Assembly: GCF_006345805.1 (NCBI RefSeq)
Contig: NW_021833063.1
Span: 1-64,000, forward strand
DNA from: Octopus sinensis
Taxonomy: Eukaryota
Length of the DNA stretch: 64,000 nt
Direction: 5' to 3'
The position numbers were made by a program, and so were the translations under genes. Shown piece after piece: positions 1 to 33,462 of this stretch; positions within the stretch are counted from its first letter, which is position 1, and each line of letters opens with the position of its first letter. The notes beneath the pieces were generated by a model, which saw nothing but the letters and a program-made list of their open reading frames with translations, did not search any database and was not told the DNA's origin.

Positions 1-1169
1 AGCCTGCTCGTGAAATTAACGTGTAAGTGGCTGAGCACTCCACAGACACGTGTACCCTTACGTAGTTTCGGGGATATTCAGCGAGTGACACAGAGAGTGA
101 CAAGGCTGGCTCCCTTTGAAATACAGGTACAACAGAAACACGAAGTAAGAGTGAGAGAAAGTTGTGGTGAAAGGGTACAGCAGGGATCACCACCATCCCC
201 TGCCGGAGCCTCGTGGAGCTTTAGGTGTTTTCGCTCAATAAACACTCACAACGCCCGGTCTGGGAAAGGAAACCGCGATCCTACGACCGCTTGTCTGCTG
301 CCCTAACCACTGGGCCATTGCGCCTCCACTGGTAAGGAGTATGGTACAAATCATTGGAAGCACTCCGTCGGTTACGACGACGAGGGTTCCGGTTGATCCG
401 AATCAACGGAACAGCCTGCTCGTGAAATTAACGTGTAAGTGGCTGAGCACTCCACAGACACGTGTACCCTTAACGTAGTTCTCGGGGATATTCAGCGTGA
501 CACAGAGAGTGACAAGACCGGCCCTTTGAAATACAGGTACAACAGAAACACGAAGTAAGAGTGAGAGAAAGTTGTGGTGAAAGAGTACAGCAGGGATCAC
601 CACCATCCCTGCCGGAGCCGCGTGGAGCTTTAGGTGTTTTCGTTCAATAAACACTCACAACGCCCGGTCTGGGAATCGAAACCGCGGTCCTACGACCGCT
701 TGTCCGCTGCCCTAACCACTGGGCCATTGCGCCTCCACTGGTAAGGAGTATGGTACAAATCATTGGAAGCACTCCGTCGGTTACGACGACGAGGGTTCCG
801 GTTGATCCGAATCAACGGAACAGCCTGCTCGTGAAATTAACTGTAAGTGGCTGAGCACTCCACAGACACGTGACCCTTAACGTAGTTCTCGGGGATATTC
901 AGCGTGACACAGAGAGTGACAAGGCTGGCCCAATAATACAGGTACAACAGAAACACAGAAGTAGAGTGAGAGAAGTTGTGGTGAAAGGGTACATCAGGGA
1001 TCACCACCATCCCCTGCCGGAGCCTCGTGGAGCTTTAGGTGTTTTCGCTCAATAAACACTCACAACGCCCGGTCTGGGAATCGAAACCGCGATCCTATGA
1101 CCACGAGTCCGCTGCCCTAACTACTGGGCCATTGCGCCTCCACTGGTAAGGAGTATGGTACAAATCATT
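1..1169 (-). repeat. Tandem array of three tRNA-derived SINE family A copies (period about 405-409 bp) joined by an identical 25-26 bp linker
   Basis: Copies at 1-329, 355-738 and 764-1143. Linker TGGTAAGGAGTATGGTACAAATCAT at 330, 739 and 1144. Same element as the solo plus-strand copy at 26452. Confidence 0.92.
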
Positions 1170-1273: not shown

Positions 1274-1465
1274 TATTTCTTTATTGCACACAAGGGGCTA
1301 AACATAGAGGGGACAAACAAGGACATACAAAGGGATTAAGTCGATTACATCGACCCAGTACGCAACTGGTACTTATTTAATCGACTCCGAAAGGATGAAA
1401 GGCAAAGTCGACCTCGGCAGAATTTGAACTCATAACGTAGCGGCAGACGAAATACCTATTTCTTT
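1274..1465 (-). mobile_element. SINE family B unit (core + tail1), 5'-truncated within the tail of a preceding unit
   Basis: Matches the B consensus. Its 5' side reads AAAGAAATAGGTATTTCGTC (a unit junction) instead of the tRNA head. Confidence 0.85.
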
Positions 1466-4603: not shown

Positions 4604-4993
4604 TGCAAAATAAAAATGACTTAATGCCATGATGCCTTTTCCATGCGCTGCTCCCAGTCCTAACTATTGACTCTAGCTGCACAAGGCTTAGCTTTTTGGC
4701 GCACGAATCTTATTTTATAGATCACGGAGGGACGAAAGATAAAGTTAACTTCGATTCAGTACTATTTGAACTCAGAACATAATGAGCCGTAACCACATAG
4801 TGCAAGGTATTTTGTCCGGCGCTTTGCCAACCCAACTCCCTATATACGTTAAAAATCCTTTCTACTATAGGCACAAGGCCTGAAATTTAGGAGAAGGGGT
4901 TAAGTCGATTAAATCGATCCCAGTACTCAACTGGTACTTAATTTATCAATTCTGAAGGATGAAAGGACATCTTATTGTGACAGACATCTTATT

Positions 4994-5780
4994 TTAAGCC
5001 ATTGCTTGCTATGAGCCCCATTAGGGGATCTGTTAAAAAGCAGTCTCATTGCCGGTTGTTCGTTGTATTCAGAGTGAATTACTTATGTACATACGAGGTG
5101 TGTTTTTTTTCATCTAGTTTCTGCTCACGATCTGTGGCCATGCTGGGACATCGCCATTTGGTGTTGCTACATAATTTTACTTCACGAATGCTTTTTAGCA
5201 ATTGACATTTGGTGCATGACAGAGTTTGATGCAATTGCTCTCATCTGCACCTCCTGCCGCGAGGTTGGTTCTTCTGGGACACCTGACAGGAAGAGGTCCA
5301 GCTTTATTTTGAAGACACCTATATCCACCCATGCAGGTCTCTCAGGTCCTTCGGGAGGATATTGAAGAGCTGTGGACTTCTGAAGCCCAGGCTATTGCAG
5401 TATCTTGTCCTACATCTTGATGGCAAATTTGGAGTCCTTGGCACTATGTTGTGGAGCCCAGTTCTAGTATTTGTGTAACTCTCGATGCCAAACTTTTGGA
5501 ACAAGTCCTTCCAGGATCTTCCAGATAATATTTCATACACATTCGCATTTGATACTACAGCTTTGAAAAAAAAAGCTAAGATGTTTACTATTGCAATTGA
5601 ATAGAAAAGGATAAATATGCTTTTTTCAGCGATCCCCATTTGGGACTTTTCGAAATAATTATCATAATTTCCAAAATAATTCACATATGAAGAAAATTTA
5701 AATACTCTTTATTTTAACTCCTAAGACACTTGGCAAAGCCAAAAAATATGAATAAAAAAATTTGTCAGTGAATGGGTTAA
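4994..5780. mobile_element. piggyBac-like MITE (TTAA...GGG-TTAA) carrying a LINE fragment
   Basis: TTAA at both ends. Both arms are homologous to the copy at 35328-35839, which lacks the LINE. Confidence 0.6.
5215..5522 (-). mobile_element. CR1-group LINE ORF2 C-terminal remnant
   Basis: Translates, with a frameshift, to NSLGFRSPQLFNILPKDLRDLHG..FKIKLDLFLSGVPEEP...RAIASNSL. Confidence 0.7.
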
Positions 5781-8475: not shown

Positions 8476-8890
8476 ATAGGAGTGGCTGTATGGTAAGTAG
8501 CTTGCTTACCAACCACATGGTCCCGGGTTCAATCCCACTGCGTGGCACCTTGGGCATGTGTCTTCTACTATAGCCTCGGGCCGACCAAGGACTTGTAAGT
8601 GAATTTGGTAGACGGAAACTGAAAGAAGCCCGTCGTATATATGTATATATACATATACATATTTGCGTGTGTGTGTGTGTGTATGTTTGTGTGTCTGTAT
8701 TTGTCCCGCAACATCGCTTGACAACCGATGCTGGTGTGTTTACGTTCCCGTAACTTAGCGGTTCGGCAATAGAGACTGATAGAATAAGTACTAGGTTTAC
8801 AAAGAATAAGTCCTGGGGTGGATTTGCTCGACTAAAGGCGGTGCTCCAGTATGGCCACAGTCAAATGACTGAAACAAGTAAAAGAGTAAA
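8476..8890 (+). mobile_element. SINE family C
   Basis: Full-length match to the C consensus. Confidence 0.9.
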
Positions 8891-11278: not shown

Positions 11279-11680
11279 TGGCTGTGTGGTAAGTAGCTTG
11301 CTAACCAACCACATGGTTTCGGGTTCAGTCCCACTGCGTGGCATCTTGGGCAAGTGTCTTCTGCTATAGCCCCGGGCCGACCAATGCCTTGTGAGTGGAT
11401 TTGGTAGACGGAAACTGAAAGAAGCCTGTCGTATATATGTATGTATATATATATATAGGTGTGTATGTTTGTGTGTCTGTGTTTGTACCCCTAGCATTGC
11501 TTGACAACCGATGCTGGTGTGTTTACGTCGCCGTCACATAGCGGTTCGGCAAAAGACGCCGATAGAATAAGTACTGGGCTTACAAAGAATAAGTCCCGGG
11601 GTCGATTTGCTCGACTAAAGGCGGTGCTCCAGCATGGCCGCAGTCAAATGACTGAAACAAGTAAAAGAGTAAAAAAGAGT
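11279..11680 (+). mobile_element. SINE family C
   Basis: Match to the C consensus. Confidence 0.9.
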
Positions 11681-11876: not shown

Positions 11877-12113
11877 GGCGACGAGCTGGCAGAAACGTTA
11901 GCACGCCGGATGAAATGCTTAGCGGTATTTCGTCTGCCGTTACGTTCTGAGTTCAAATTCCGCCGAGGTCGACTTTGCCTTTCATCCTTTCGGGGTCGAT
12001 AAATTAAAGTACCAGTTACGCACTGGGGTCGATGTAATCGACTTAATACCTATGTCTGTCCTTGTTTGTCCCCTCTATGTTTAGCCCCTTGTGGGTAATA
12101 AAGAAATAGGTAT
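11877..12113 (+). mobile_element. SINE family B (tail1)
   Basis: Match to the B consensus, ending GAAATAGGTAT. Confidence 0.9.
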
Positions 12114-12620
12114 AATGGAAAAACTGATTTCCTTCCCGAACTGAGCAATATGCTTAGCACCCTTTTTTCGGACATCTCAATATTGACCCGGAATTCTCCC
12201 GTTCTATTCCTCTTGCTTTTTTCTTGCATTTGTGTTCCGCACTTATTACAAGGAGATACATTTCCTACCTGGTCAATAACACTTTGTCTCTCTCTGAAAG
12301 GACATCACTTCATCTTCACTTCAGACTCTTTTGTAAAAGTCTGACCAGCGTGGTGCTAGTGTGAACAACTAAATGGGCTAGAATTAATTACTGAAGGCCG
12401 TAAGTGGGTTGTTTGGTTGAGTGCGTTGTCATTTACGGTAGGTCGCAAATAGCAAGGTCGATATAATACTATAGTAGCACCCAATATTTAAATAATCGTT
12501 TTTATACAATTCTTAATAATATTCAATTTTAAGATTTTACAGGATTTTTTTAAAACATCGAATGGCTAGGATGGTCCACCCGAGTAAAATAGGAATCAAA
12601 GGGATCCATTTATAATAATG

Positions 12621-12668
<48 letters not shown>

Positions 12669-12684
12669 TAATAATAATAATAAA

Positions 12685-13241
12685 TGCCCTGATGCAGTAC
12701 CAGGCAGTGGCTGTCATGGTTACTCATCTTAACAGATTGGAAGTGTTATTATGTACATTGTTTTTTTCTTAGTATAAAAGATGGGCTACAGCAAATATTC
12801 TGCTCAATACCACAGATTTACTTGTTAGTTGTTTAACCTTAATCAGTTGAGCAAGTCCCTTAGTGACTGACGATATGTGCATCTCTGATCACGAGCAGAA
12901 GTAGTGGGGGAGAATCATAGCCGTGTGTTGAAAGGAATTCTTAGAGGCTTGGATAATTCACCTCTGGAAACATGGGTGGTTCGTTCAACATCCTTAAACA
13001 ATCCTTATTCAGGGACCTTTTGAGCAGGATGGGCTACTCGATCAGAAGAAAATTCTAACTGGGCCCCCACCTGCAAGGTCATGCGCTGTTTATCTTGATA
13101 TGAGATCACCATCTCGCGCACATATGGTTGTGATGCATGTGCCTGGTGTACCCTTATCAGACGGGTAGTCATGATGGGTATACTGGGCTTCGTATATTTT
13201 ACCCCAGTGTCACTTTGATGGCATGCACTGCTCTCTCACTC
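12685..13241. mobile_element. About 555-bp element E embedded in (AAT)n
   Basis: (AAT)n on both sides. A copy with the same two ends lies at 38153-38705. No TIR, Pol III boxes or long ORF seen. Confidence 0.8.
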
Positions 13242-13277
<36 letters not shown>

Positions 13278-13540
13278 CAAGGTTGAGAAACACTGTGTTA
13301 GAATCTTCGTGTTTAAATCCATCTGACCATGTGAGGATAATCAATCATTTGGAAGGATAAACTCAGGAATCCGAATTAATTGATAATGATCTTCGGCGGC
13401 AACAATTATTTGTCAATAAGAGGATTTGTAGAAAGGTTCGATAAGTTCATATCAATTGAAAGCTTTTAATATGGATCACTATCGGTAATTGGCGACCATC
13501 CATGAAGTTAATCGATACGGTTGACTTCTATGTATGGGTT

Positions 13541-14725
13541 TGTAGCGTAGCTGACATCCTCACTGTTTGAGAGATATATTAGAAGTGTTAGATAACAACC
13601 GTCTTCGGCTATTTGAACCCTGTTGTGTCCACTGCTCTGATTGGTTGGCATTGGCGCTGTTTGTCTCTTGACTTAATTCGCGCCAGTGTGTAAGCCAACC
13701 AATCACAGCCTTCAGATATAGTCCCGTGACACTGTTTTTCTTTGTCCTTGTTTGAGCCTACCCCAGGATTTATAAGGCGCCAGCATTCACTACTCCAGGT
13801 CTTTGGTTCCTGTCCTTTTCAGGACTAACCCTCTGACCACAGAGTTACTCAGCCATGTTCCAGCAACACCGCCTTAGGTTCCAGTCCTTCTCAGGGCTAA
13901 CCTCTGACTACAGAGCTACTCAACCAGTTCCAGTTCTGGCGACAGACGACCAGTCCAGCCAACGACGACGCTAACATACACCTGCAACGCAGGACGTCTC
14001 CATCACCGTCGCCATCATCTCAACCTATTTCTTTACTACCCACAAGGGGCTAAATACAGAGGGAACAAACAAGGACAGACATAGGTATTAAGTCGATTAC
14101 ATCGACCCCAGTGCGTGACTGGTACTTAATTTATCGACCCCGAAAGGATGAAAGGCAAAGTCTACATCGGCGGAATTTGAACTCAGAACGTGGCGGCAGA
14201 CGATATACCTATTTCTTTACTACCCACGAGGGGCTAAACACAGAGAGGACAAACAAGGACAGACATAGGTATTAAGTCGATTACATCAACCCCAGTGCGT
14301 AACTGGTACTTAATTTAACGACTCCGAAAGGATGAAAGGCAAAGTCGACCTCGGCGGAATTTGAACTCAGAACGTAGCGGCAGACGATATACCTATTTCT
14401 TTACTACCCACAAGGGGCTAAACACAGAGGGGACAAACAAGGACAGACATAGGTATTAAGTCGATTACATCGACCCCAGTGCGTAATTGGTACTTAATTT
14501 ATCGACTCCGAAAGGATAAAAGGCAAAGTCGACCTCGGCGGAATTTGAACTCACAACGTAACGGCAGACGAAATACCGCTAAGCATTTCGCCCGCCGTGC
14601 TAACGTTTCTGCCAGCTCGCCGCCATTTCTGCCAGCTCGTCGCCATCATCTCAACCGTCGCCATCACCACCGTCGACTTCACCAATACGTACACAGGTTT
14701 GTAATTCTGAAGCTCAGTAGCTACA
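13541..14725 (+). mobile_element. Putative solo LTR interrupted by a SINE B trimer
   Basis: TGTAGC...GCTACA inverted termini, mirrored CCAAT boxes, TATA-like TTTATAAG at about 13770 and an internal duplication of about 45 bp. No clean TSD. Confidence 0.35.
14026..14624 (-). mobile_element. SINE B trimer: head + 3 x (core-tail1), period 184 bp
   Basis: Unit starts at 14026, 14210 and 14394. An 18-bp direct repeat GTCGCCATCATCTCAACC lies at 14008-14025 and 14639-14656. Confidence 0.92.
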
Positions 14726-14881
14726 TGGTGTCATGATGTGCAACTAGCTGTGTACACCAGTTTTCTACTGTTATTTCATTTTGCTACGTTTAGCAATCTA
14801 CACACTGAACGTGTAGTGTAGACATAACCGCAGAAGTTGAAACTATAAAAAGCATTCTCCATAGAGCTGCAGTAGAGCATT

Positions 14882-15264
14882 CTCTCTTTACTTGTTTCAG
14901 TCATTTGACTGCGGCCATGCTGGAGCACCGCCTTTAGTCGAGCAAATCGATCCCGGGACTTATTCTTTGTAAGCCCAGTACTTATTCTATCGGTCTCTTT
15001 TGCCGACGAGGACGTAAACACACCAGCATCGGTTGTCAAGCAATGCTAGGGGGACAAACACAGACAAACACACATATATATATATATATACATATATACG
15101 ACAGGCTTCTTTCAGTTTCCGTCTACCAAATCCACTCACAAGGCATTGGTCGGCCCGGGGCTATAGCAGAAGACACTTGCCCAAGATGCCACGCAGTGGG
15201 ACTGAACCCGGAACCATGTGGTTGGTTAGCAAGCTACTTACCACACAGCCACTCCTGCGCCTAT
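14882..15264 (-). mobile_element. SINE family C
   Basis: Match to the C consensus. Confidence 0.9.
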
Positions 15265-15380
15265 AGCATTGTGGTGCATCTTTATGCAGGTAATATCACG
15301 GTCAGCGACATTGAATATCGAAATAGTGCACTTTTAAAGATAACTATGTGTAAATGACTGGACTGACGATTAATCTAGAC

Positions 15381-15780
15381 CAGGCCTGGCCAACTCGAAT
15401 TACATTGCGGGTCACTTTAATCACAGAAATTTTTTTGAGCGTCGCTTGTATACTGACAGAATTGAAAGCATTTTGCTTACTCATGCTATTATTACAACAA
15501 TAAATAAATGACCTTAATAGTTATCGCCAGGCAGTCCAGGAAAATAGGACGAATGCTGTTGATTAGCTCCAAGAGGCCATCGCCTCTAGCTAGCTATGTG
15601 TCACACAAACCTCAACGTTAAATATTTTCGTTGCAAAAACAGTATATATATATTTTTTGCTTTTTCTTACAACCTTTAATTTTTGATAAAATTTTAAAAA
15701 CATTTGTTTAGATAAATCCATTTCAAGAAAGTATCAAGCGGGCTGCATGCGGCCTGCAAGTCTCAGGTTGGCCAGCTCTG
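15381..15780. mobile_element. hAT-superfamily MITE (400 bp)
   Basis: TIRs CAGGCCTGGCCAAC / GTTGGCCAGCTCTG, subterminal GCGGGCTGCATGCGGCC, 8-bp TSD ATCTAGAC / ATCAAGAC (7/8 match). Confidence 0.8.
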
Positions 15781-16061
15781 ATCAAGACCAAATAACAAGC
15801 TTTTGAATGTCCGGATTTTTAAGTACAAAATTAACATTAAAGGTTATTAGAGTTACAAAGAAGGCGGCGAACTGCTAGAATCGTTCGTACGACGGACAAA
15901 TGCTCTGAGGCATTTTTTTAAAAGGCCCATTCACTGTTCACTTCCTGTGCATTATTCTATGTACTGTTCATGAACTTTTGGCTGCTTTTTTCTGATGAGC
16001 TGTAGTGCACTTGAGCACTATATACAATAAATTCATAATCAATATCATTATCATCATTATT

Positions 16062-16565
16062 ATGACGGCTTAGTGGTTAGGATGTTGAACTGATGATCGC
16101 TAGATCGTGATTTCAATTCCTAGACCAGATGGTGCGTTATGTTCTTGAGCAAAACACTTCATCTCGCATTGCTCTGCGAATGCTTCGACACCCGACGCGT
16201 GGTACACGGTGCACCTGTTCAAACATGGGAATGAGAACATCTAAGGTTTGAATATCAAGAGTTCCACCCGCAGTAAACCCTATGTGCTTGATGGCGGCAG
16301 TCCTCGTAAACAGTGAGGATAATATAAACCTCCTGCAGGCTATCGTCACAGAGAATACATATTGGACTGGACAAACGCTCAACCTGCTACTGCAGGCAGA
16401 GCAGAGGATTTTAGACCAGCCCCCAGAAATAGTAGAAGTAAGGGAGGAAGTCGAGAGAGATTGAGCTAATGTGCGGCACGAACATTTGATCATTAGAAAC
16501 AAATCGCTTGTGTAGGTCGTTCGGCAAAAGCTGGACTCTCATACATTATCTTCGACGGAAGAATC
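16062..16565 (+). mobile_element. CORE-type SINE carrying an extra segment of about 240 bp (16222-16462)
   Basis: Head, CORE and tail are homologous to 30385-30640, which lacks the middle segment. Confidence 0.55.
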
Positions 16566-16573
16566 CATCATTA

Positions 16574-16962
16574 GACGGCGAGCTGGCAGAAACGTTAGCA
16601 CGCCGGGCGAAATGCTTAGCGGTATTTCGTCTGCAGTTACGTTGAGAGTTCAAATTCCGCCGAGGTCGACTTTGCCTTTCATCCTTTCGGGGTCGATAAA
16701 TTAAGTACCAGTTACACACTGGGGTCGATATAATCGACTTAATCCGTTTGTCTGTCCTTGTTTGTCACCCTGTGTTTAGCCCCTTGTGGGTAGTAAAGAA
16801 ATAGGTATTGCGTTTGCCGTTACGTTCTAGGTTCAAATTCCGCCGAGGTTGACTTTGCCTTTCATCCTTTCGGGGTCGATAAATTAAGTACCAGTTGCGT
16901 ACTGGGGTCGATCTAATCGACTGGCCGCCTCCCCCAAAAATTCGGGCCTTGTGCCTAGAGTG
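16574..16962 (+). mobile_element. SINE B array: head-core-tail1-core-tail2
   Basis: Junction GAAATAGGTATT at about 16797-16809. Terminal tail2 GGCCTTGTGCCTAGAG. Confidence 0.88.
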
Positions 16963-17502
16963 GTTAATAATTTTGTGGGTGTCTGCCAAGTCAGCTGCCA
17001 GACGTCGGAATTTCAATGTACCCATGCCCGTAAAGATCAAGGGCAATATATACAGTAAAAATGAATAAGCAGAACCGTTTGAGTGCCGAATGAGATGTCT
17101 TACGGTATTTCTTCCGGTTCTTTGCGCTCTTTGGGCTTGGTCCATGGGATGTGATTTGTTGTCGAGCCTAACACTACGAACCGGTCTTTTGAATGTAACT
17201 CTAAGGAATATTTTCCATGTTTTTATTTTTTGCTGTCTGGTGAATAAAGTCTTTATGGTCATTCAAAAAACGAGAACAATTACAAAAAACAAGTGCTAAT
17301 ATTCCATTGAAAAAAGTCTATTGAATAAGAAATTCAATGTAAAGCTCGAAAGAGGAAAAAAATCTAAAGGTTTGAGTGGAATTTTTCGTTAGAGAATTCT
17401 TTCTGAAAATTTAGGCCTTTTTCTTTTCCGTCAAATTATTTTACTTTATTTCGTTTTTGGATTTGGTTTGCAAGATTCTTTATATGAGTTCGTGCGTTAA
17501 AG

Positions 17503-17975
17503 CATATTCTGTTGTGTCTGGGGAGAGTCATTTTCTTTTTGTGCCTTATAATGTAACACATCCTAAAATTTTCGTTACGTCTTGCAACCTTTTCAATAGT
17601 CAAGGTTGGAAGACGCAACGGATCTTTTCGGTTTGAACAGCAGTTTTATCTAGCGGTGTCATATGAAATTGTCACCCATAATTATGACCCTAGTATCGAT
17701 CTATTGCATTTCAATCTGTTTTAGGGTTGGGGTTAGGGGTGGGGGGAACGGTATCTTTTTTTCTTCACAAATGTAAATAAACCCAATCTGTTTCTTAAAC
17801 GAGGGACATATTCATACGGCACAGAATGTTTTTTTTTCAAACCGAAAAGATTCGACGCAACGAAAATTTTAGGATAATAAAAATAAGAAATAAGTGGAAA
17901 TTTTACCGGTGCGTGTGTTACATTATAAAGCACAAAAAGAAAATGACTCTCCCCAGACACAACAGAATATTTTAC
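17503..17975. mobile_element. Palindromic (foldback) MITE with TIRs of about 80 bp, hosting a Merlin-like MITE
   Basis: ATATTCTGTTGTGTCTGGGGAGAGTCATTTTC... is mirrored by ...GAAAATGACTCTCCCCAGACACAACAGAATAT. Confidence 0.75.
17620..17853. mobile_element. Merlin-like MITE
   Basis: TIR GGATCTTTTCGGTTTGAA, perfect 8-bp TSD GACGCAAC, internal TTAGGGTTGGGGTTAGGG. Confidence 0.72.
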
Positions 17976-18378
17976 TTTAGAATTGCTTACAAATCGTTTT
18001 TATTCCAGTTATTGGCATTACTTGTCAAAGGGAAATAACTTGTTATTGTGATACCAGTAATCTCCCTTCATTTATAATTTAGCGGGAAATAATATTACGT
18101 ACATTTGTGTTCAAAGAACTTGTGTAAGTTGTTTCTCATAATTATTATTTCTTTTTAATTGTAAGTCAAGATAACAAACTCAACCTCTGGTTTCTAACTG
18201 GTTAAATAGTTCATCATATTAACAATATAATGATTTGATATCATAGGAACATCGATAACTCTTCTATCTGTCTACACAAAATTGTATTTTCCACTCTTTT
18301 TGTATATATACAATTTATATTACTTTCTAACTCTGCTTGTGTACGTGTATACACACACACGTGTGTATATGTGTGTAA

Positions 18379-18465
18379 CGGAGGTAAAGAATACGCACGC
18401 CACCTGTTTTCGGCGTAACCCTAATTCTTACCCTAAACACCGGGTGTGCGTATTCTTTACCTTCG
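18379..18465. mobile_element. Mini inverted-repeat element with a CCCTAA core
   Basis: GGAGGTAAAGAATACGCAC / GTGCGTATTCTTTACCTTC around AACCCTAATTCTTACCCTAA. No TSD recovered. Confidence 0.55.
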
Positions 18466-18531
18466 CCACGTTACGAAGACAATAAGCACAGAAACAAAAC
18501 TTCAGGGAAGAGACAACTTTTAACAAATTTG

Positions 18532-18727
18532 GGCGATCCTTCGGTATAGGTACCGTAAGTACCGGAAGTGGCTTTGTTTACATTTCTGAAGATAACAGAA
18601 ACCCTTTTCTCCCACCCCTAACTGTAAACCTAACCCTAACACACCCTACCCCCCCCATATATATATTAAAAAAAAACACTTTCTTGAAATGTATCGGGTA
18701 CTTCCGGTACCTATACCGAAGTTTGCC
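18532..18727. mobile_element. Merlin-like MITE, second family
   Basis: GG-initial TIRs (CTTCGGTATAGGTACC...GGAAGT), 8-bp TSD CAAATTTG on both sides, internal CCTAACCCTAAC. Confidence 0.68.
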
Positions 18728-19167
18728 CAAATTTGTACATATGTTTAGTACTTTGCCGTTGTCATCTTAATAGTAAAACACTGCATACGTATACAATAAC
18801 TTTGGCAAAAGAGTAAGTTTTTGTAGGAAGCGTAAATTTTAGATAAAATCCAGTCTTTTGACCATGAACAAGTGTGTGTGTGATTTAAATACTAATTTTC
18901 TGTCTACCCTGTATAATATCGGCCGTAATAGATATACAATACTGTACATTTTGATTAATACTCTCACACACACAACACACACAACGTATATATATGTTAT
19001 TCTTTCTGGGAAGAGTCTTTCTCTTTCAGTACCTTAAATGAGTGGAAATCGAACCAGTAAGTGTTAAATAATAAGGCACTAAAAGAGAATGACTTTCCCC
19101 AAAGAATCTTGCAAACCAAATACAAAAACGAAATACATACATACACACATACGTACTTGTATGTATA

Positions 19168-19384
19168 CTCTTACTCTCTCTTTTACTTGTTTCAGTCATT
19201 TGACTGCGGCCATGCTGGAGCACCACCTTTAGTCGAGCAAATCGACCCCAGGACTTATTCTTTGTAAGCCCAGTACTTATTCTATCGGTCTCTTTTGCCG
19301 AACCACAAAGTGACGGCGACGTAAACACACCAGCATCGGTTGTCAAGCAATGCTAGGGGGACAAACACAGACACACAAACATAG

Positions 19385-19427
<43 letters not shown>

Positions 19428-19610
19428 ACGGGCTTCTTTCAGTTTCTGTCTACCAAATCAACTCACAAGGCTTTGGTCGGCCCGAGGCTATAGTAGAAGA
19501 CACTTACCCAAGATGCCATGCAGTGGGACTGAACCTGGAACCATGTGGTTGGTAAGCAAGCTACTTACCACACAGCCACTCCTGTACCTATATGCCACTC
19601 CTGCGCCTAT
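19168..19610 (-). mobile_element. SINE family C immediately upstream of the FANCL acceptor
   Basis: Match to the C consensus. Its 5' end is duplicated (GCCACTCCTG twice). Confidence 0.9.
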
Positions 19611-19644
19611 ATTTTTTCTTTTTTTTTTTTAGGGATGCTGTTTA

Positions 19645-19893
19645 ATGGATTTGTGGGAAGTATGTCCACAGATGGTTTGTATGAACAAAGAAGGCACATT
19701 CTACGATGGTTATATCGGTGTCATGAATCAGAATTTCCGCTTGTCTCTCACTCTACCCCCTGATGGTTCTCTCCGGGAAGCTGAGCTAAAGTTTCAGCCT
19801 GATCTTTACTATCTTTTAATTGAGCACCAACCATTGATCAAACAGCGCCTAAGCCAGTGCCCAAGTGTTACAGCTTTTCTACAGGAATTGAAG
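19645..19893 (+). CDS. FANCL: FANCL coding exon 1 (83 codons, N-terminal ELF domain)
   Basis: MDLWEVCPQM...FYDGYI...LIKQRLSQCPSVTAFLQELK aligns by eye with the human FANCL N-terminus (CPLL..YEGFI..QQRMQHSPDLMSFMMELK). Phase-0 donor AAG|GTATGT at 19893/19894. A polypyrimidine tract plus AG at 19631-19632 lies 12 nt before the ATG. Confidence 0.9.
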
Positions 19894-20070
19894 GTATGTT
19901 TGAACCATTTTTTTACATGTTACACTAGCTACCTTCATTCATCATCATCTTTAAAGCACACAAAACCATCATGCTGCAGCTAGGACTGGACCTTTATGGT
20001 GTTAGGCTAGTTTTGGCGAAATCAAATCCTGAACCTGTTATTGATGTTACAATGAAATTTTGGTGGGGTT

Positions 20071-20446
20071 TGGCACATAAAAAGCACCATCCGATCGTAG
20101 CTGTTGCCAGCCTCGCCTGGCCTCCGTGTCCGGTGGCACGTAAGAAGCACCATCCGATCGTGGCCGTTTGCCAGCCTCGCCTGGCCACTGTGCCGGTGGC
20201 ACGTAAAAAGCACCATCCGATCGTGGCCGTTTGCCAGCCTCGTCTGGCACCTGTGCCGGTGGCAGGTAAAAAGCACCCACTACACTCATGGAGTGGTTGG
20301 CGTTAGGAAGGGCATCCAGCCGTAGAAACATTGCCAGATCAGACTGGGCCTGGTGCAGCCTTCTGGCTTCCCAGACCCCAGTTGCACCGTCCAACCCATG
20401 CCAGCATGGAAAGCGGACGCTTAACGATGATGAGGATGATGATGAT
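20071..20446 (+). mobile_element. RTE-type 3' end with a triplicated unit of about 63 bp and a (GAT)n tail, in the FANCL intron
   Basis: GTTGGCGTTAGGAAGGGCATCCAGC...CCAACCCATGCCAGCATGGAAA...GATGATGA. AAGCAC recurs at about 20082, 20145, 20208 and 20271. A degenerate reverse copy lies at about 24240-24420. Confidence 0.65.
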
Positions 20447-20477
20447 CACTTTTAGTTAAGGTAGTCACAAGCAGGTT

Positions 20478-21047
20478 TATTGGGTTGTCCGCAAAGTTCT
20501 TGCCGATTTATAGCAGCTTGCCTTTCGACTTATTATAGAACATGGTCGAGTCCATAAAATAGGATTTGACTACACCTCCATTTAGAGCACAGTTTAAGCT
20601 ATCTTTTCATGGAAGAAGGCTTATGTTCCTATAACCTGTGTTAATTCTGTAACCCTTTAAAATGGAAGATAAGAAAGTTCATTTTCGCTACTTGATGCTT
20701 TGGGAACCAGACAAAAATTGCTGCAGCTCGGCTGGGATGTGTTACCCCACCCTCCATATTCACTAGATATTGCTCCTTCGGATTTCCACTTATTCAGGTC
20801 TCTGTAGAATAATCTTAATGGTAAAAATTTCAATTCCTTGGATGACGTAAAAAGATACCTTGATGAATTCTTTGCCATGAAACCACCTCAATTCTGGGAA
20901 GAGGGTATTTTCAAGTTAAAGGAAAGATGGAGACGCTTTGTGCAACAAAATGGTTCATATTTGGTTGATTAAAAATGTAATGTCAAGTATTTATTGAGCT
21001 TTTTCTTTCCTTTAAAAACCGGCACAAACTTTTCGGACAACCTAATA
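20478..21047 (+). mobile_element. Mariner (D,D34D) internal-deletion derivative, 570 bp, in the FANCL intron
   Basis: TA-flanked TIRs TTGGGTTGTCCG..AAGTT. Transposase start MEDKKVHFRYLML is joined to the C-terminus LGWDVLPHPPYSLDIAPSDFHLF...RW...NGSY. Confidence 0.9.
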
Positions 21048-21451
21048 GTATAGAAGTAATAGATGTAAAATCATCTGCTGCAGAATCTTGGACCGGGAGT
21101 ATTTTTAGTGACTGAATGATTGTGGTAATGAAATGTGCCATCACTTAATGATTCTGGTACAAGCATTATACTGTGCCTATTGAACACAGCTGTACTCAGG
21201 AGCAAGTGTGATTTTGGAGCAAAAAAATCATGCTTTTGCTAAAATTTTTTGGGTGCCTCTGTAGTTGTGAATAGACATAGACACATCACATCACCTGATC
21301 CTCCTACCTGTGATCCAGCTGAGCATCGAAGAAGTGACAGTCAGAGAGAGAGAGAGAGAGAGAGTGAGAGAGAGAGTGTGAGAGAGAGAGAGAGAGAGAG
21401 CTGTACTAGCACTCAGCTGAGATTCATTTACAGCAGAGTAAAGTGGGGCAA

Positions 21452-22782: not shown

Positions 22783-22871
22783 GCTTAAGCCTACAAATTT
22801 ATGTGAATGATCTTGAGATAAATGAATTTATAATAGAAAGAATTTAATTGGAAATTGTTTTTTTCTTGCAG

Positions 22872-23729
22872 GTTCTTCTTGAAAAAGTTGTTGAAAAACC
22901 TAACAGATCATCAGAACAGTTTTTTCGAGTACCGAATCGATTGCTTAATGAGTTGAAGCAACTAGGCTGGGATAAATTGGTCTATATTGGTCCTGCTTTC
23001 AAAAAACTGCATCTCAGCAAGGAAGACGATGAAGGGCGCACTCATATATTGAAGATACAACTTCATGCTGAACACCCTCGGGTACAACCTACCTGTGTTA
23101 CTGACCTTCCAAAAATGTTTAAATACACCTGGAATCCAAATAGTAAACTGATTGATCTTTATACCCAGTTTGAAAGAGTGATCCAATCTTATCAGATGTT
23201 CTGGGATGCCATGGAAGAAATCGACAAAAAAACATGGGTTTTGGAACCCGAGAAGCCTACATATAGCGCTACGTTTCGAAGAATAGCTCTAAGTCCAAAT
23301 TCATCTCTCCAGGTAATATTTGATCCTGACGAACCCCAGAACTTCGTCCAGTGTCAGTTCATTGGTGCCGAGAGTGTGGTCGATCCACTTAAGCAAAATC
23401 TAAACACGAATCTCCAGAAATGGGACATGGGCATAAATGTTCTTCAGAATCTTGAGAATTTACTGGAGATCGAGTTTCCTTCTCCGGCTTTCACGAAGAA
23501 GGAAGAATTTCTTGGGGAATGTGGTATTTGCTATTCTTATCGACTTGGCATGGAACTGCCAAGCAAAGTGTGTGAAAGCGCCCAGTGTGGTCAACCTTAT
23601 CACCAGTCGTGCCTCTATGAATGGTTAAAAACTCTGCCATCTAGTCGTTATAGTTATAACATGGTGTTTGGGGAATGCCCAATATGCATGAAACCTTTAA
23701 CAGTTACTGTTACTACATCTGCAGATTAA
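22872..23729 (+). CDS. FANCL: FANCL coding exon 2 (285 aa, double-RWD plus C4HC3 RING); joined protein 368 aa
   Basis: Acceptor ttttcttgcag at 22871, in frame with exon 1. Diagnostic motifs LGWDKLVY, FWDAMEEIDKKTWVLEPEKP, RRIAL, CGICYSYRL, CGQPYHQSCLYEWL, FGECPIC. No stops or frameshifts. Confidence 0.96.
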   Translation, partial: VLLEKVVEKPNRSSEQFFRVPNRLLNELKQLGWDKLVYIGPAFKKLHLSKEDDEGRTHILKIQLHAEHPRVQPTCVTDLPKMFKYTWNPNSKLIDLYTQFERVIQSYQMFWDAMEEIDKKTWVLEPEKPTYSATFRRIALSPNSSLQVIFDPDEPQNFVQCQFIGAESVVDPLKQNLNTNLQKWDMGINVLQNLENLLEIEFPSPAFTKKEEFLGECGICYSYRLGMELPSKVCESAQCGQPYHQSCLYEWLKTLPSSRYSYNMVFGECPICMKPLTVTVTTSAD

Positions 23730-23802: not shown

Positions 23803-24176
23803 ATAGGCATAGGAGAGGCTGTGTGGTAAGCAGCTTGCTTATCAACCACATGGTTCCGGGTTCAGTCCCACTGCGTGGCACCTTGGGCAAGTGTCTTCTA
23901 CTATAGCCCCGGGCCGACCAAAGCCTTGTGAGTAGATTTGGTAGACGGAAATTGAAAGAAGCCCGTCATATGTATGTGTGTGTGTGTATGTTCCCCCAAC
24001 ATCACTTGAGAACCAATGCTGGTGTGTTTACATCCCCGTAACTTAGCAGTTCGGCAAAAGAGACCGATAGAATAAGTACTAGGCTTACAAAGAATAAGTC
24101 TTGGGGTCGATTTGCTCGACTAAAGGCGGTGCTCCAGCATGGCCACAGTCAAATGACTGAAACAAGTAAAAAAGAG
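23803..24176 (+). mobile_element. SINE family C, about 75 bp after the FANCL stop codon
   Basis: Match to the C consensus. Confidence 0.9.
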
Positions 24177-24573
24177 CTTCTCAGTAGTTATCATAAATCC
24201 TTTCAAATACTTTAATTTAGCGATTATTTATATATAATCGCATCTGTTTTCCATGGTGGCATGGGTTGGATGGTTTGACAGAACCCAGCTTGCTGTAGGG
24301 CTGTGCTGAGCTCTAGTGTCAGCTTTTGGCATAATTTCTTTGGCTGGATGCCCTTCCCAATGCCAACCCCATTACAGTGTGTTCCAGGTACTTTTTCATA
24401 TGACTGGCACTCGAAAAGTCACCAAGTAACTCACAAGTCAAGTAAAGAATGGGAAAACAGGAAAAAACAGAAAAAGAAAGCCCCCTCTAAATAAGAGGGA
24501 GGAGTATTTGAAAGGTGGGGAGGTGGCTTTATGCCAGCTGTTAGGAGGTCGAAGTGTGATAGAAGTACAAGAA

Positions 24574-24805
24574 GGTGGTGAGCTGGCAGAAACGTTAGCA
24601 CGCCTGGCGAAATGCTTAATGCTATTTTGTCTGTCTTTATGTTCTGAGTTCAAATTCTGCTGAGGTCGACTTTGCCTGTCATCCTTTTGGGGTCGATAAA
24701 TTAAGTACCAGTTACGCACTGGGGTTGATGTAATTGACTTAATCCCTTTGTCTGTCGTTGTTTTTTTCCCTCTATGTTTGGCCCCTTATGGGCAATACAG
24801 AAATA
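24574..24805 (+). mobile_element. SINE family B (tail1)
   Basis: Match to the B consensus. Confidence 0.85.
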
Positions 24806-24998
24806 AGAGGTACAAGCGGTTGTCTTGTTATAGGAAAGAGACACATGGCTACCCCATAAAAGAAGGGGTGGGAGTAGCTAGGGAGAAGATAGGAATGGTG
24901 GTGATACAAGATACAAGAAGCTTTGCTGCTGTTAACCAATGAACTGTGAAGTAAGTGTGGAAGCTGTTGTCAGTCAGGCAGACTGGGTCAAAGAGTTG

Positions 24999-25037
<39 letters not shown>

Positions 25038-25112
25038 CCTGAAGGGCATATCATAATGGTTGTGTTAGGTGGATACATGACCAAATGGCTCAGAAGGACC
25101 TTTCACTGATTG

Positions 25113-25143
<31 letters not shown>

Positions 25144-25208
25144 CCTCTATACCACTATTACTACAATATATCACTGTCACAATATACCACTTTTATACTA
25201 TACCACTG

Positions 25209-25507
25209 TGGAGGTGCATGGCCTAGTGGTTAGAGCAGTGGACTCGCGGCCGAGGGATCGCGGGTTTGAATCTCAGACCGGGTGGTGTGTGTATTTATGA
25301 GTGAAACACCTAAGCTCCACGTGGCTCCGGCAGAAGGTAATGGCAAACTTCTGACTCTTTCACCACAACTTTCTCTCACTCTTTCCTCCTGCATCTTGCA
25401 GCTCACCTGTGACAGACCGTCGTCCTGTCCAGGTTGGAAACCTATACACCAAGGAAACCGGGAAACCGGCCCTTATAAGCCAGGCATGGCTCGCGAAGGA
25501 ACAAACA
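25209..25507 (+). mobile_element. Chimeric SINE: family A head and body + V-like tail
   Basis: 14-bp TSD ATACTATACCACTG at 25195-25208 and 25508-25521. Body as in 26452, tail as in 7818 and 39081. Confidence 0.85.
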
Positions 25508-25617
25508 ATACTATACCACTGCCATTACAATATACCACTACTTTTACACTATACTGTTAAAACAATACACCAGTTATATACCAATAACACCACTATAGCC
25601 ACAACACACCATTGCTG

Positions 25618-25814
25618 TTCAGGAATTTGGACCTGGAGATCTCCATTTCCAGCGACTTCGAGGGCCACCTCCCAGTGGTGTTGGGTGTCAACGAAGAGCT
25701 CTTGACTACAAAAAAAACAACCAAAGTTTTTTTTTTTCCCAAGGTCTGGGGTCTCCTGCCTCTAAGCCCTAGACTATCACCTAATCACCCTTACCCATCT
25801 TGTTGCTTAACAAC
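25618..25814. mobile_element. Insertion of about 200 bp with a 14-bp TSD, probably a truncated LINE end
   Basis: ACACACCATTGCTG at 25604-25617 and 25815-25828, inside a degenerate ACAATATACCACT minisatellite (about 25140-26050). Confidence 0.5.
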
Positions 25815-26074
25815 ACACACCATTGCTGCTACATTATATCACTTTTATCACAATATCTGGCACTACCTCAGTATATTACTGTTACTACAATAATATACCA
25901 GTGTTACTATATATCATTTTGACCACACTTCATTGAACACTACCATTATGACAATATCCCACTGTTACTAAACTATACCAGTATACCATTGTTCTTTCAA
26001 TAAACCATTGCTAACTACAATATACCATGGCTGTTATGCTATACTACTGTTGTTCTTTTAGCAATTGTCTTTTT

Positions 26075-26289
26075 TTAACCCTTCAGCATTCAGATTACTC
26101 TGTTGAAAGTAATGCTTGCTAATTTCACATTGTTTTGAGTTTATCGTACATTATCTTGCAGCTCTGTGAATGTTTATTTTTAAAATAACATTGTTGGGTA
26201 GGTGTGAGAGGTCTGATCTGGTCAGTTTGATCATAGAACAAGTAGAATATTTGGACCTGATATGGCTGGTTTGAATACTAAAGGATTAA
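26075..26289. mobile_element. piggyBac-like MITE
   Basis: TTAA-CCCTTCAGCATTCA ... TGAATACTAAAGGA-TTAA. Confidence 0.75.
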
Positions 26290-26325
26290 GCAGTTTTTTG
26301 AGATTTCTTAAAACAAAAAGAAATT

Positions 26326-27038
26326 TATAATAGTTGTATACTGTCAACTTAACGTGACAGTAGGGGATTACACCACCGCTGTTTAGCCCTAGGAAGCATC
26401 AAACGCTTCCTGTCGGCTTCAACACACTTACTGTGTCCTTATATATATTTAGTGGAGGCGCAATGGCCCAGTGGTTAGGGCAGCGGACTCGCGGTCGTAG
26501 GATCGCGGTTTCGATTCCCAGACCGGGCGTTGTGAGTGTTTATTGAGTGAAAACACCTAAAACTCCACGAGGCTCTGGCAGGGATGGTGGTGATCCCTGC
26601 TGTACTCTTTCACCACAACTTTCTCTCACTCTTACTTCCTGTTTCTGTTGTACCTGTATTTCAAAGGGCCGGCCTTGTCACTCTCTGTGTCACGCTGAAT
26701 ATCCCCGAGAACTACGTTAAGGGTACACGTGTCTGTGGAGTGCTCAGCCACTTACACGTTAATTTCACGAGCAGGCTGTTCCGTTGATTCGGATCAACCG
26801 GAACCCTCATCGTCGTAACCGACGGAGTGCTTCCAATACACTTCTTTCATATCTTCGCCGATGAAGGTTTTTCGGACAATATATATATTTACGAAGGGGA
26901 AACAAATACCCCCAACAGCTAGTCTCCTCTTCGTAAGAGTGTCGAAGCGACAGGAAGCGTTCAATGCTTCCTAGGGCTAAACAGTGGTGGTGTAATCCCC
27001 CTACTGTCACGTTAAATTGACAGTATACAACTATTATA
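26326..27038. mobile_element. MITE with TIRs of about 105 bp and TA ends, containing a SINE A insertion
   Basis: TATAATAGTTGTATACTGTCAA...CCTAGGAAGCAT is mirrored at 26930-27038. Confidence 0.85.
26452..26836 (+). mobile_element. SINE family A, full length
   Basis: tRNA-like head GTGGAGGCGCAATGGCCCAGTGGTTAGGG...GGTTTCGATTCCC with A and B boxes; 3' end CGACGGAGTGCTTCCA. Confidence 0.92.
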
Positions 27039-27434
27039 TCGCCCCACCACCGTACATATCTCTATGAGATATTTAGAAATTTAATATTTCTGAAAAAGAA
27101 ATTTCATATTCGTTTACTAAATATTGTTGTACACCTATTGCACTATTATTTTTTCTCGTGTCAAACGCTTTAGTTTGACCAGAATAAGTACCAGTTGAGG
27201 TGATCGATTTACCCTGTTCCTCAAACCTTTCTGGCCTTGTACCAAAATTTGAAACCAATGTTTGCACCCACTAAGGCGACAAGCTGGGAGAAAATGCTTA
27301 GTGGCATTTTGTCTATCTTTACCTTCTGAGTTCAAATTCCTCTGAGGTCGACTTGCCATTCATCCTTTTGGGGTCGATAAAATAAGTACCAGTTGAGCAC
27401 TGGTAATCGACTTGCCTCTCCCTTAAAATTGCTG

Positions 27435-28435: not shown

Positions 28436-28675
28436 CGCTATCACTTATGTGTAAAGAATAATGAACAAGATGTCATTTTCATACGTATGGAATTAGTCTA
28501 ACTGTCTGTCTCTCTCATAAACTCTTATCATCAGCAGTTTTATGAAGGAAAAGTGAGAGCAGACGACAATGAATTAATGAATAAATGAATAACAATGACA
28601 TTGGTCGTTTCAATGCTCGTTTCAAGCTATTGTTAAGTCACTCTTAAGCAGAACTAAATACGTTATTAATAAATA

Positions 28676-33239: not shown

Positions 33240-33429
33240 CAGTTACCACTGCTGCTGCAGCTGCAGCTGCTACTACTACTGCTGCTGCAGCTACTACTAC
33301 TACTGCCGCTACTACAACCACCACCAGAACCACCATGACCGCCATCACAACCACCATGACCACCACCACCACCACAGCTGCTGCTGCTACTACTACAACT
33401 ACTACTACTACCACTACTGTTGCTGCTAT

Positions 33430-33462
<33 letters not shown>

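Follow-up and report, generated by a model that had tools for sequence, protein, structure and literature searches.

How does a short interspersed element (SINE) come to stand in head-to-tail arrays whose units all join at the same internal position? The question is raised by 64 kb of Octopus sinensis DNA (contig VCDQ01003549.1, positions 1-64000; hereafter the window), in which the original prediction, made from the sequence alone, had described six multi-unit loci of a SINE called family B. In these arrays the end of one unit, a module named tail1, is followed directly by a position within the head of the next, the g site. In our analysis this junction was fixed, the bases just past it carried duplication-like signatures, non-SINE cargo was found at the same site, and two octopus species had made different additions at one locus. 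Insertion of tail1 units at the g site of resident heads is, in our judgement, probably the mechanism that founded the arrays.

The overall sample comprised about 100 kb, namely the window and ~39 kb of independent Octopus vulgaris sequence, with 12 junctions. An open reading frame (ORF) of the window (22848-23729, 293 aa) is the C-terminal part of FANCL, and the O. sinensis FANCL locus (L002, contig positions 9645-33729) is identical to the same positions of the window; the FANCL loci of three further species were used. The 28-kb locus of O. bimaculoides (L001) is collinear with window ~3200-43850. In the 73-kb locus of O. vulgaris (L003), positions 39220-69821 are collinear with window 1-30071, and positions 1-39219 are the additional sequence that is independent of the window; the arrays at 40020, 50120 and 56425 lie outside the span of this orthology comparison. 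The third locus is that of Argonauta hians (L005).

Family B and its arrays

Family B is a SINE of ~232 nt. On the element strand it consists of a 48-nt head start (GGCGGCGAGCTGGCAGAAACGTTAGCACGCCGGGCGAAATGCTTAGCG) and a 184-nt unit, which begins with GTATTTCGTCTGCC (also given as GTATTTCGTC) at the g site and ends in tail1 (...GGGTAGTAAAGAAATAG, with ..AAAGAAATAG at consensus position 232; module string ..CCCTTGTGGGTAGTAAAGAAATA). A related family, tail2, has head and core in common with it and differs in its end (...GGGCCTTGTGCCTAGAG). Consensus mapping with blastn placed ~23 family B loci in the window. In the head, the g site stands in the context GC/GGTATTTCG or CC/GTATTTCG (slashes mark boundaries throughout). 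Many heads read CCGTATTTCG rather than CGGTATTTCG, whereas internal junctions in the same arrays read AGGTATTTCG, so the GG at internal junctions derives from the incoming tail1. The head had been described as a tRNA head. ARAGORN made no tRNA call and Rfam gave no tRNA match at E <= 5; behind the label stands a B-box-like GAGTTCAAATTCC, recognised by eye along with a weak A-box-like TGGCAGAA. The consensus has no run of four T (T4), the terminator of RNA polymerase III (Pol III), and read-through of arrays by this polymerase is therefore plausible.

Target-site duplications of 6-19 nt and of variable sequence surround solo copies and arrays, and four of them were confirmed against empty orthologous sites. 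Precise empty sites exist for copies 11872 and 8032 in O. vulgaris and for 24574, 41483 and 42273 in O. bimaculoides. The 5' ends vary (consensus positions 11, 24, 26, 57 and 69), and the 3' end is constant, ..GAAATA(G). With these duplications, with presence or absence between species and with variable 5' truncation beside a constant 3' end, family B has the properties of a SINE mobilised by a long interspersed element (LINE). The tail1 family is young and active: no tail1 copy occurs in the orthologous 28 kb of O. bimaculoides, and O. vulgaris lacks the solo copies 11872 and 8032. As a module, tail1 is old. A SINE of A. hians (L005 11100-11325 and 13211-13350) combines the same core with a different tRNA-like head (..GTGTTCGAATCCC..), ends its tail1-like module in ..TAATAGAGAAAT (GAGAAAT) and has a 19-nt duplication. 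This SINE shows that heads and tails have been reshuffled as modules across octopods.

A LINE-like fragment, the C-terminal part of an ORF2 at 4865-5684 on the minus strand (..WKILEGLVP.., ..LFNILPKDLRDL.., ..FKIKLDLFLSGVPEEP), is followed by a head-less core and tail2, which may represent the 3' untranslated region of the LINE partner of tail2. At the orthologous position in O. bimaculoides (L001 8815-9017) a SINE with a head is found instead, and the 3' flank is common to both species. A protein search with this fragment returned four proteins; the O. vulgaris locus L004 (20 kb) is without a family B copy.

In the arrays (Table 1), extra units start with GTATTTCG directly behind the ...GAAATAG of the preceding unit. 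Alignment to the consensus by blastn showed that all nine internal junctions of the window lead from position 232 (..AAAGAAATAG) to position 48/49 (GTATTTCGTC), as do the three junctions in the independent O. vulgaris sequence; one junction (56746-56760) contains an extra GAAATA. The six loci of the original prediction are thus arrays with a fixed junction, and their extra units, which begin at consensus 48/49, lack the head start, as it had stated. Tandem Repeats Finder reported a period of 184 bp at 14023-14577 (3.0 copies, 94% matches, score 998) and periods of 184-189 bp at 42319-42683, 50168-50656 and 56448-56916. The prediction that tail2 always comes last was borne out as well: the tail2 unit is 3'-most in all four window arrays that have one, and it is never internal in an in-register array. 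Internal units have complete tails, and five arrays end in the different, tail2-type family. The independent 39 kb of O. vulgaris contain five tail1 loci, two of them arrays. A single duplication encloses the whole array, with none between the units, at 14026 (19 nt), 42273 (15 nt), 56425 (~14 nt) and L003 21566 (14 nt).

The predicted boundaries of the trimer at 14026 (14008-14656) run from one copy of its perfect 19-nt duplication to the other, and the array lies exactly between the two copies. It is present in both O. sinensis and O. vulgaris; all its units belong to one minority subfamily, and beyond the first 27 nt they show differences of 3.8% and 6.4%. A 20-bp tandem repeat at 14606-14646 corresponds to the partial duplication of the 5' end of its head. 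The variant CATAGGTATT (AATACCTATG on the element strand), which had been taken as private to this trimer, is a subfamily marker that also occurs in the solo copies 11872 and 41483 and at L003 4616 in O. vulgaris. In the 42273 dimer the two units carry different tail variants, as claimed, and represent two tail1 subtypes. The copy at 1274-1465 is indeed truncated inside the tail of a previous unit, and because it begins within that tail it was copied from a multimeric template. Re-mobilisation of multimers, a further claim of the original prediction, may be represented by this one copy.

The collinear O. vulgaris locus of array 16574 consists of head, g site, core and tail2 and lacks the tail1 unit, which would be the tail2-only allele that had been predicted for arrays; in O. 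bimaculoides the whole segment is missing. Within L003 55914-56282 (collinear with 16574-16962), the tail2 SINE, which has a 13-nt deletion after GTATTTCGTCT, is followed by a 5'-truncated SINE (consensus 15-137) and an inverted tail1 segment (220-168), an unexplained inversion or fold-back. A core and tail2 match near the O. bimaculoides orthologue (L001 13192-13321) was considered as a tail2-only allele and rejected, as it is an independent, species-specific insertion into an older SINE head. Here (L001 13170-13350) a 5'-truncated tail2 SINE lies within the older head at GAATCGTTAG with a 10-11-nt duplication, and the O. sinensis orthologue is an empty site (window 15862-15900). Nesting in SINE heads thus occurs at other head positions, too.

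Table 1 Positions of family B arrays and copies and of one further repeat (window coordinates, unless marked L003)
Feature	Position	Strand	Remarks
Copy 1274	1274-1465	-	5'-truncated; starts with 9 nt of preceding tail (AAGAAATAG/GTATTTCG); also in O. vulgaris
Copy 8032	8032		empty site in O. vulgaris, CTTAC/GATCAT/GG
Copy 11872	11872		empty site in O. vulgaris, AAATT/AGTATAGTGGAAAA/ACTG
Trimer array	14026-14624	-	3 tail1 units; blastn
Trimer, left duplication copy	14007-14025		CGTCGCCATCATCTCAACC; 19 nt, identical to right copy
Trimer, unit 3 (3'-most)	14026-14209	-	g-core-tail1; consensus 48-232, 94% identity; period 184; ends ...GAAATA beside duplication
Trimer, unit 2	14210-14393	-	g-core-tail1; rare start GTATATCG..GCCGC in common with unit 3
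Trimer, unit 1	14394-14577	-	g-core-tail1; continuous with the only head; 14393-14624 = consensus 1-232 at 96.6%
Trimer, head	14578-14637	-	first 48 nt, once per array; plus 13-nt partial duplication of head 5' end
Trimer, right duplication copy	14638-14656		perfect 19 nt
Array 16574	16574-16962	+	head, tail1 unit, g-core-tail2; blastn 16576-16960
Copy 24574	24574		empty site in O. bimaculoides, ..AGC/GGTACAAG/C
Locus 27952	27952-28440	+	resident SINE of another subfamily, tail1 unit A (27960-28166), tail1 fragment B
Fragment B	28195-28255	+	61-nt tail1 piece, truncated at both ends
Resident tail2 SINE, 3' part	40034-40187	-	GGCATTTCG..core..tail2; older; 85.8% to consensus
Full-length tail1 SINE with own head	40188-40418	-	95.2% to consensus 3-232; 3' end ..GAAATA abuts resident GGCATTTCG
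A11 run, then U6 pseudogene	40419-40529	-	A11 at 40419-40429; Rfam RF00026, 82.5 bits
Resident head, first ~48 nt	40519-40567	-	87.8% to consensus 1-49; upstream of U6 and SINE cargo; ends ..GATTAACGGC
Copy 41483	41483		empty site in O. bimaculoides, GAT/GGTGTT/AGATG
Dimer array	42274-42683	+	two different tail1 subtypes
Dimer, duplication	42252-42266 and 42684-42698		AGTACATGGTCATCA; 15 nt; empty site of whole dimer in O. bimaculoides, CAGT/AGTACTTGGTCATCA/CAATTC
Array 50120	50120-50694	+	head, tail1 unit, tail1 unit, g-core-tail2
Array 56425	56426-56983	-	head, tail1 (AAATT core type), tail1 (TAAAT core type), g-core-tail2; flanking duplication ATTTMTCTCAGCTT
O. vulgaris array	L003 2801-3222		tail1, then tail2-like unit
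O. vulgaris array	L003 21566-21980		two tail1 units; 14-nt enclosing duplication
~400-bp interspersed repeat	8478-8889, 11279-11680, 14881-15265, 19161-19592, 23803-24176, 34642-35063, 36382-36772, 45129-45507, 51554-51939, 57052-57443		

Footprints at the g site and target preference

Rare variants were compared in an alignment of 36 units, setting 11 adjacent pairs against 615 pairs from different loci. Neighbours had rare variants in common within the first ~27 nt past the junction in 4/11 pairs, compared with 4.9% of the 615 (binomial ~1e-3), and had none in common in the remaining ~157 nt. The pairs concerned are units 2 (tail1) and 3 (tail2) of array 56425 (GTATTTC.TCTGTC---TATG, with a rare 3-nt deletion just past the junction), units 1 and 2 of L003 21566 (TATTTTGTCTGGCGCTACG), unit 1 (tail1) and unit 2 (tail2-like) of L003 2801 (GCTGCTACG) and units 2 and 3 of the trimer (GTATATCG..GCCGC). 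Sharing of this kind, close to the junction, looks like a target-site duplication of the resident g sequence. Since the units of the 56425 pair and of L003 2801 come from different families, whole-unit duplication and RNA switching both fail to explain these two cases. Neighbours are each other's closest relatives along the whole length only in units 2 and 3 of the O. vulgaris 27952 locus and possibly in the trimer; the other adjacent pairs are 0.91-0.94 identical, which is the range of unrelated copies. Furthermore, the diagnostic head subtype agrees with the family of the 3'-most unit and not with the tail1 unit that it touches, both at L003 2801 (GAATCG..GGGCAAAAT) and in the O. vulgaris 27952 resident. 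A formal age test of resident against inserted units on a tail2 consensus of our own was dropped, the consensus having been built from two of the tested copies.

The locus 27952-28440, which was missing from the original prediction, shows growth of an array in place. The resident head has a 21-bp internal duplication. Unit A repeats ~90 nt of the resident's peculiar g site, head and core start before it continues in tail1-type sequence, a structure that fits a 5' end resolved through annealing to the conserved core. Fragment B is flanked on both sides by TAGGTATTTCTTTCGGGGCTTTTATATTCTG, a direct repeat of 31 nt without mismatch (28164-28194 and 28256-28286; 100% identity by repeat search), which is a target-site duplication of the classical type, located at the g site of the head. 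It came from elsewhere, because it is only 88% identical to the neighbouring unit, and it is absent from O. vulgaris. The flanks of the locus are collinear in O. sinensis and O. vulgaris, and an orthologous unit A with the rare variant TAAAG is present in both. The additions differ: O. sinensis has unit A and fragment B, O. vulgaris has its counterpart A' and two more tail1 units. It follows that this array was extended in situ once the two species had separated.

Foreign cargo at the g site was found in array 40020, beside which lies a pseudogene of the U6 small nuclear RNA (snRNA) that the original prediction had not listed (40425-40529). Placement by blastn yielded a tail1 and a tail2 unit at 40034-40416, so that the array as such was confirmed; the head visible in it is that of the inserted element, however, and the resident head lies upstream of the pseudogene. 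The U6 sequence (40430-~40515; also given as 40425-40529) lacks the 5' stem-loop and the 3' U tract, in place of which the A11 run is found, and positions 1-17 of the RF00026 model are not truly matched. The cargo meets the resident head with a CGGC microhomology at its 5' junction and reads GAAATA/GGCATTTCG at its 3' junction. The two resident halves have diverged alike from the consensus, in contrast to the closer insert (Table 1). A 19-nt repeat with 17/19 identical positions brackets the composite (40566-40584 and 40001-40019), and its right copy abuts another SINE head; the two heads are only 78% identical. U6, A11 and the SINE together look like a template-switch chimera, although the 5' truncation of U6 and the intervening A11 would also be possible products of two successive insertions. 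Whether the cargo entered in one step or two, duplication and recombination models are excluded at this locus because the tail1 3' end lies at the g site and the 5' end is out of register. O. bimaculoides (L001 25500) lacks a surrounding 1.6-kb block (39640-41276), in which the U6 composite is found together with part of a LINE reverse-transcriptase fragment (40721-41900). Since this fragment runs on past the edge of the block, loss by deletion from O. bimaculoides and gain by insertion in O. sinensis are equally likely.

Solo copies end in ..GAAATA(G), followed by the target-site duplication. Among 14 primary sites with a recognisable duplication, five duplications start with RGT(A/T), against ~3% expected from base composition (~5e-5), and another 4-5 start in (TA)n. 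The microhomology that had been noted at the 3' end of solo copies is thus real, but the targets favour RGTA and, as a second class, (TA)n over GGTATT as such. Both strands of the window hold 1059 RGTA, 106 GGTAT and ~34 head-type sites. If RGTA alone decided the target, ~3% of insertions would be expected in heads; of the tail1 insertion events inferred, 11/23 are at head g sites and 12/23 elsewhere, the latter starting with RGTA, (TA)n or other sequences. This excess suggests that more than a word of 4-5 nt matters. Possible factors are a longer complementarity of read-through RNA carrying ..GAAAUAGGUAUUUCG and an easier completion when the cDNA anneals to a resident head. With ~12/23 insertions at unrelated sites, head targeting is a strong preference and not a site specificity, and to speak of a SINE parasitising its own family, as had been done, goes beyond data in which about half of the tail1 insertions lie elsewhere.

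Repeated insertion weighed against other origins

We infer the following course of events. The partner LINE would nick and prime preferentially at targets whose duplication starts with RGTA or (TA)n, and the SINE head itself holds such a site, which is used far more than the frequency of the motif predicts. The bottom strand of a resident head, nicked at the g site, would serve as primer for the reverse transcription of a tail1 RNA from its ..GAAAUAG end and thereby produce the fixed 3' junction GAAATAG/GTATTTCG. The new cDNA being homologous to the resident head, its 5' end would usually be resolved by annealing in register, either to the duplicated target or to the head; the incoming head would merge with the resident one, and the extra unit would seem to lack its first 48 nt. 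Repeated hits would add units on the 5' side and leave the oldest element, often of the tail2 family, in the 3'-most place. Arrays without an internal T4 terminator may then be transcribed by Pol III as multimers and occasionally be recopied, and local duplication may add further units. The original prediction had tail1 enter the heads of its family at GGTATT/GTATTTCG, which the duplications, the 31-nt repeat, the U6 cargo and the orthologous additions support; its wording that the RNA primes on DNA has to be reversed, the primer in target-primed reverse transcription being the nicked DNA and the template the RNA. None of the four points by which it might have been refuted, as it had itself named them, turned out against it: the junctions are fixed, tail2 is never internal, neighbours are not always closest relatives, and solo targets are enriched for RGTA.

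Several points weigh against this course of events. The sample is small (64 kb and ~39 kb of independent sequence with 12 junctions), and neither a LINE with tail1 nor the endonuclease of the partner was found. In 7/11 adjacent pairs the duplication signature is lacking; this is expected where duplications are <=12 nt, which would go unseen, their bases being almost invariant, or where the 5' end was resolved in the head, and is not proof. Unit A needs a duplication or annealing tract of ~90 nt, against 6-31 nt elsewhere. The O. vulgaris units 2 and 3 at 27952 are near-duplicates with at least five private variants in common, and an out-of-register tandem duplication would be a possible explanation of their hybrid start, too. 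Adjacent tail1-tail1 units are more alike than random pairs (0.935 vs 0.907; Mann-Whitney p = 0.007). Given its age, the divergence of the trimer is compatible with units identical at birth, so that duplication or a multimeric single source is possible there. Taken with the similarity of neighbours and the O. vulgaris units 2 and 3, the trimer indicates that duplication or single-source copying does contribute. The O. vulgaris state at 16574, where identity is only ~88-90% and a rearranged SINE piece lies next to the element, could be a deletion rather than the predicted allele. At 40020 a longer duplication that includes the adjoining head is possible despite the 78% identity. Finally, copying of arrays en bloc may have inflated the count of events at head sites.

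The enclosure of arrays in a single duplication (14026, 42273, 56425 and L003 21566) could also mean that a whole array is born at once, if the reverse transcriptase copies a SINE RNA up to GUAUUUCG, changes over to a tail1 RNA at its 3' end through a GG/GUAU microhomology, perhaps repeatedly, and ends on a full-length RNA. Such template switching accounts for the fixed junction and for internal units that are exclusively tail1, and copy 1274, with its 9 nt of previous tail, could be an aborted switch. The same genome shows a switch to U6, and switching to snRNA is known for many LINE clades (PMC4476161). Yet rare variants are common to neighbours only in the ~27 nt past the junctions, even in tail1/tail2 pairs, and switching explains neither the perfect 31-nt duplication around fragment B nor the unusual ~90 nt of the resident repeated in unit A, the agreement of the head subtype with the 3'-most unit or the different units added at the orthologous 27952 locus in two species. 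At the U6 locus the enzyme would have had to return, in a last jump, to an internal point of a SINE RNA, the very point at which it had left the first template. We consider a one-shot origin of this kind unlikely. Slightly better placed, if still unlikely, is that dimers and trimers arose once by any route and have since served as transcribed sources, most arrays being ordinary copies of composite SINEs; Alu, for comparison, is a dimer. The lack of a T4 terminator should let Pol III read through such masters, copy 1274 was made from a multimer, the 42273 dimer is missing from O. bimaculoides as one block, and two architectures recur (tail1-tail2 and tail1-tail1-tail2). Arrays of the same architecture nevertheless differ position by position (unit 1 has the TAAAT core type in 50120 and AAATT in 56425, and unit starts differ), the 27952 array grew in place, the U6 locus and fragment B are copies of no master, and the origin of the first multimer would be left unexplained.

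Slippage or unequal crossing-over between the GGTAT of the head and a GGTAT in the 3' flank, followed by expansion through unequal exchange, has been put forward to explain SINE arrays in bivalves (PMC11481361) and squamates (PMC10702118), and one duplication around the array with a head on the first unit only is found in Scapharca broughtonii and the squamate satellites as well as here. The subfamily uniformity of the trimer (3.8% and 6.4% differences), compatible with identical units at birth, and the at least five private variants common to the O. vulgaris units 2 and 3 speak for it. But DNA-level duplication cannot create five arrays that end in a different family (tail2 type), units of different subtypes occur in 56425 and 42273, and most neighbours are no closer than unrelated copies outside the 27 nt next to the junction; both the U6 and full-length SINE cargo and the foreign fragment with its 31-nt duplication arose by insertion. 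As the general origin of the arrays we regard it as quite unlikely. The constant period of 184 nt might bring to mind rolling-circle reverse transcription of a circular ~184-nt RNA, the more so as molluscs are known to have small tandem repeats that produce circular RNAs (retrozymes). No hammerhead, other ribozyme or other Rfam family was detected in 13980-14680 at E <= 5, however, nor a ribozyme in the window at gathering scores; units within arrays vary in subtype and tail type, and the arrays are short (2-3 units) and always begin with one complete head, all of which makes this origin extremely improbable.

If insertion into resident heads is accepted, a further step suggests itself as possible, though on balance doubtful: the tail1 lineage could be a homing SINE, its 3' end and the nick preference of its LINE matching its own head and the read-through RNAs of arrays being the best templates. 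A read-through RNA ..GAAAUAG-GUAUUUCGUC.. would then be perfectly complementary to a nicked head, and arrays would extend other heads, a self-reinforcing seeding of proto-satellites by retrotransposition and not by recombination.

Other repeats and features were noted in the same sequences. A ~409-bp repeat stands in 2.9 tandem copies at window 1-1169 and singly at 26442-26830; it also occurs in O. bimaculoides (L001 6099-6477 and 11407-11772) and thus in both Octopus species. A second interspersed repeat of ~400 bp, often adjoining microsatellites, has at least 10 copies in the window (Table 1), and its translation contains a recurring ..FQSFDCGHAGAPP.. string that is present in Argonauta, too. 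In a FANCL intron, the copy number of a 63-bp tandem repeat is 3.3 in O. sinensis (window 20071-20277) and ~11 in O. vulgaris (L003 58950-59650). Window 24171-27237 occurs twice in the O. vulgaris assembly (L003 63316-67332 and 69932-73032), through segmental duplication of a few kb or through an error of assembly. Identity to L003 is 86-93% in window ~12100-21300, which includes arrays 14026 and 16574 and the 5' half of FANCL, and 95-98% in the flanking blocks. Very long simple repeats are (CTA)156, (ATGT)215 and a 20-mer repeated 63 times (33387-33854, 45733-46593 and 52516-53770). A tblastx search of the window for the neighbouring genes seen in Argonauta returned repeats only and no GINS2 exons.

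Relation to known systems

Exact-pattern scans of metagenome contigs for the junction and for the head gave no match, and a protein search with a junction-spanning antisense ORF of the SINE returned a single 543-bp contig and no further arrays. The sequence strings of the element had no match in a literature search, and no description of such arrays in octopus was found in the literature searched, octopus repeat papers included. SINEs make up about one tenth of the O. vulgaris genome (PMC13282606), and one repeat-annotation paper counts 893 unclassified SINE families among recently active insertions. In such annotation, a family with a preference for nesting in its own heads would distort counts of copies, estimates of age and the calling of families, and Pol III transcription units spanning several copies would arise from it. 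Moreover, GTATTTCG in the head offers a defined target for testing the specificity of cephalopod LINEs.

Nested or target-preferring retrotransposition is familiar from Alu copies in the A-rich parts of older Alus, from the Zepp clusters of Chlorella and from Tx1L in Tx1D, where new copies enter residents because the target motif lies in the element. Chimeric L1s have been resolved by annealing to a resident L1, and homology between cDNA and resident can guide the resolution of the 5' end. To our knowledge, no report on these nested cases describes SINE units that lack the head and stand in register at a single fixed position within the element. In RTE-related LINEs and SINEs the 3' end of the element correlates with the first nucleotides of the target-site duplication (GBE 2018, PMC6007223). 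Similarly, the octopus ..GAAATAG precedes duplications that start with GGTA/AGTA or TATA; the preference of the RTE-related SINEs lies outside the element itself and involves no self-nesting, whereas the octopus site lies within the element's own head. Chimeric and processed U6 pseudogenes are ascribed to LINE template switching in PMC4476161 (MBE 2015), whose section headings also list polyadenylated snRNA pseudogenes. As in the chimeras described there, the octopus U6 precedes a retroelement copy on its 5' side and reads in the same direction; unlike them, it is 5'-truncated and followed by A11, has a full-length SINE as partner and lies inside the head of another SINE.

The closest parallel is found in another mollusc. 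In the blood clam Scapharca broughtonii, tandem-like arrays of the form TSD1-(SINE)n-TSD1 (TSD, target-site duplication) were attributed to unequal recombination (Mob DNA 2024, PMC11481361). As in octopus, one duplication encloses the array, the complete head (tRNA-related in the clam) is found on the first unit only, later units have the same head truncation, and arrays lie in introns also. The clam arrays contain 4-15 units of a single family with truncated tails on the internal units, while octopus tails are complete and the last unit often belongs to another family; the junction-proximal duplications and the foreign cargo of octopus point to repeated insertion. For the SINE-derived satellites of squamates, in which SINE portions likewise stand head to tail, the authors consider that either unequal recombination or "insertion into the same locus" may have set them off (Mob DNA 2023, PMC10702118). 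These satellites are long, partly homogenised and built of SINE portions, in contrast to the octopus arrays of 2-3 heterogeneous units with a single defined junction. The architecture as such is therefore already known; what is new are the junction footprints and the differences between species that point to repeated in-register insertion of a SINE into its own head. The conversion of transposable elements to satellites is usually ascribed to unequal recombination, for which there is little direct evidence. The octopus footprints, namely junction duplications, foreign cargo and species-specific additions, point to in-register retrotransposition as the founding step, and the arrays show how a dispersed repeat may seed a tandem one.

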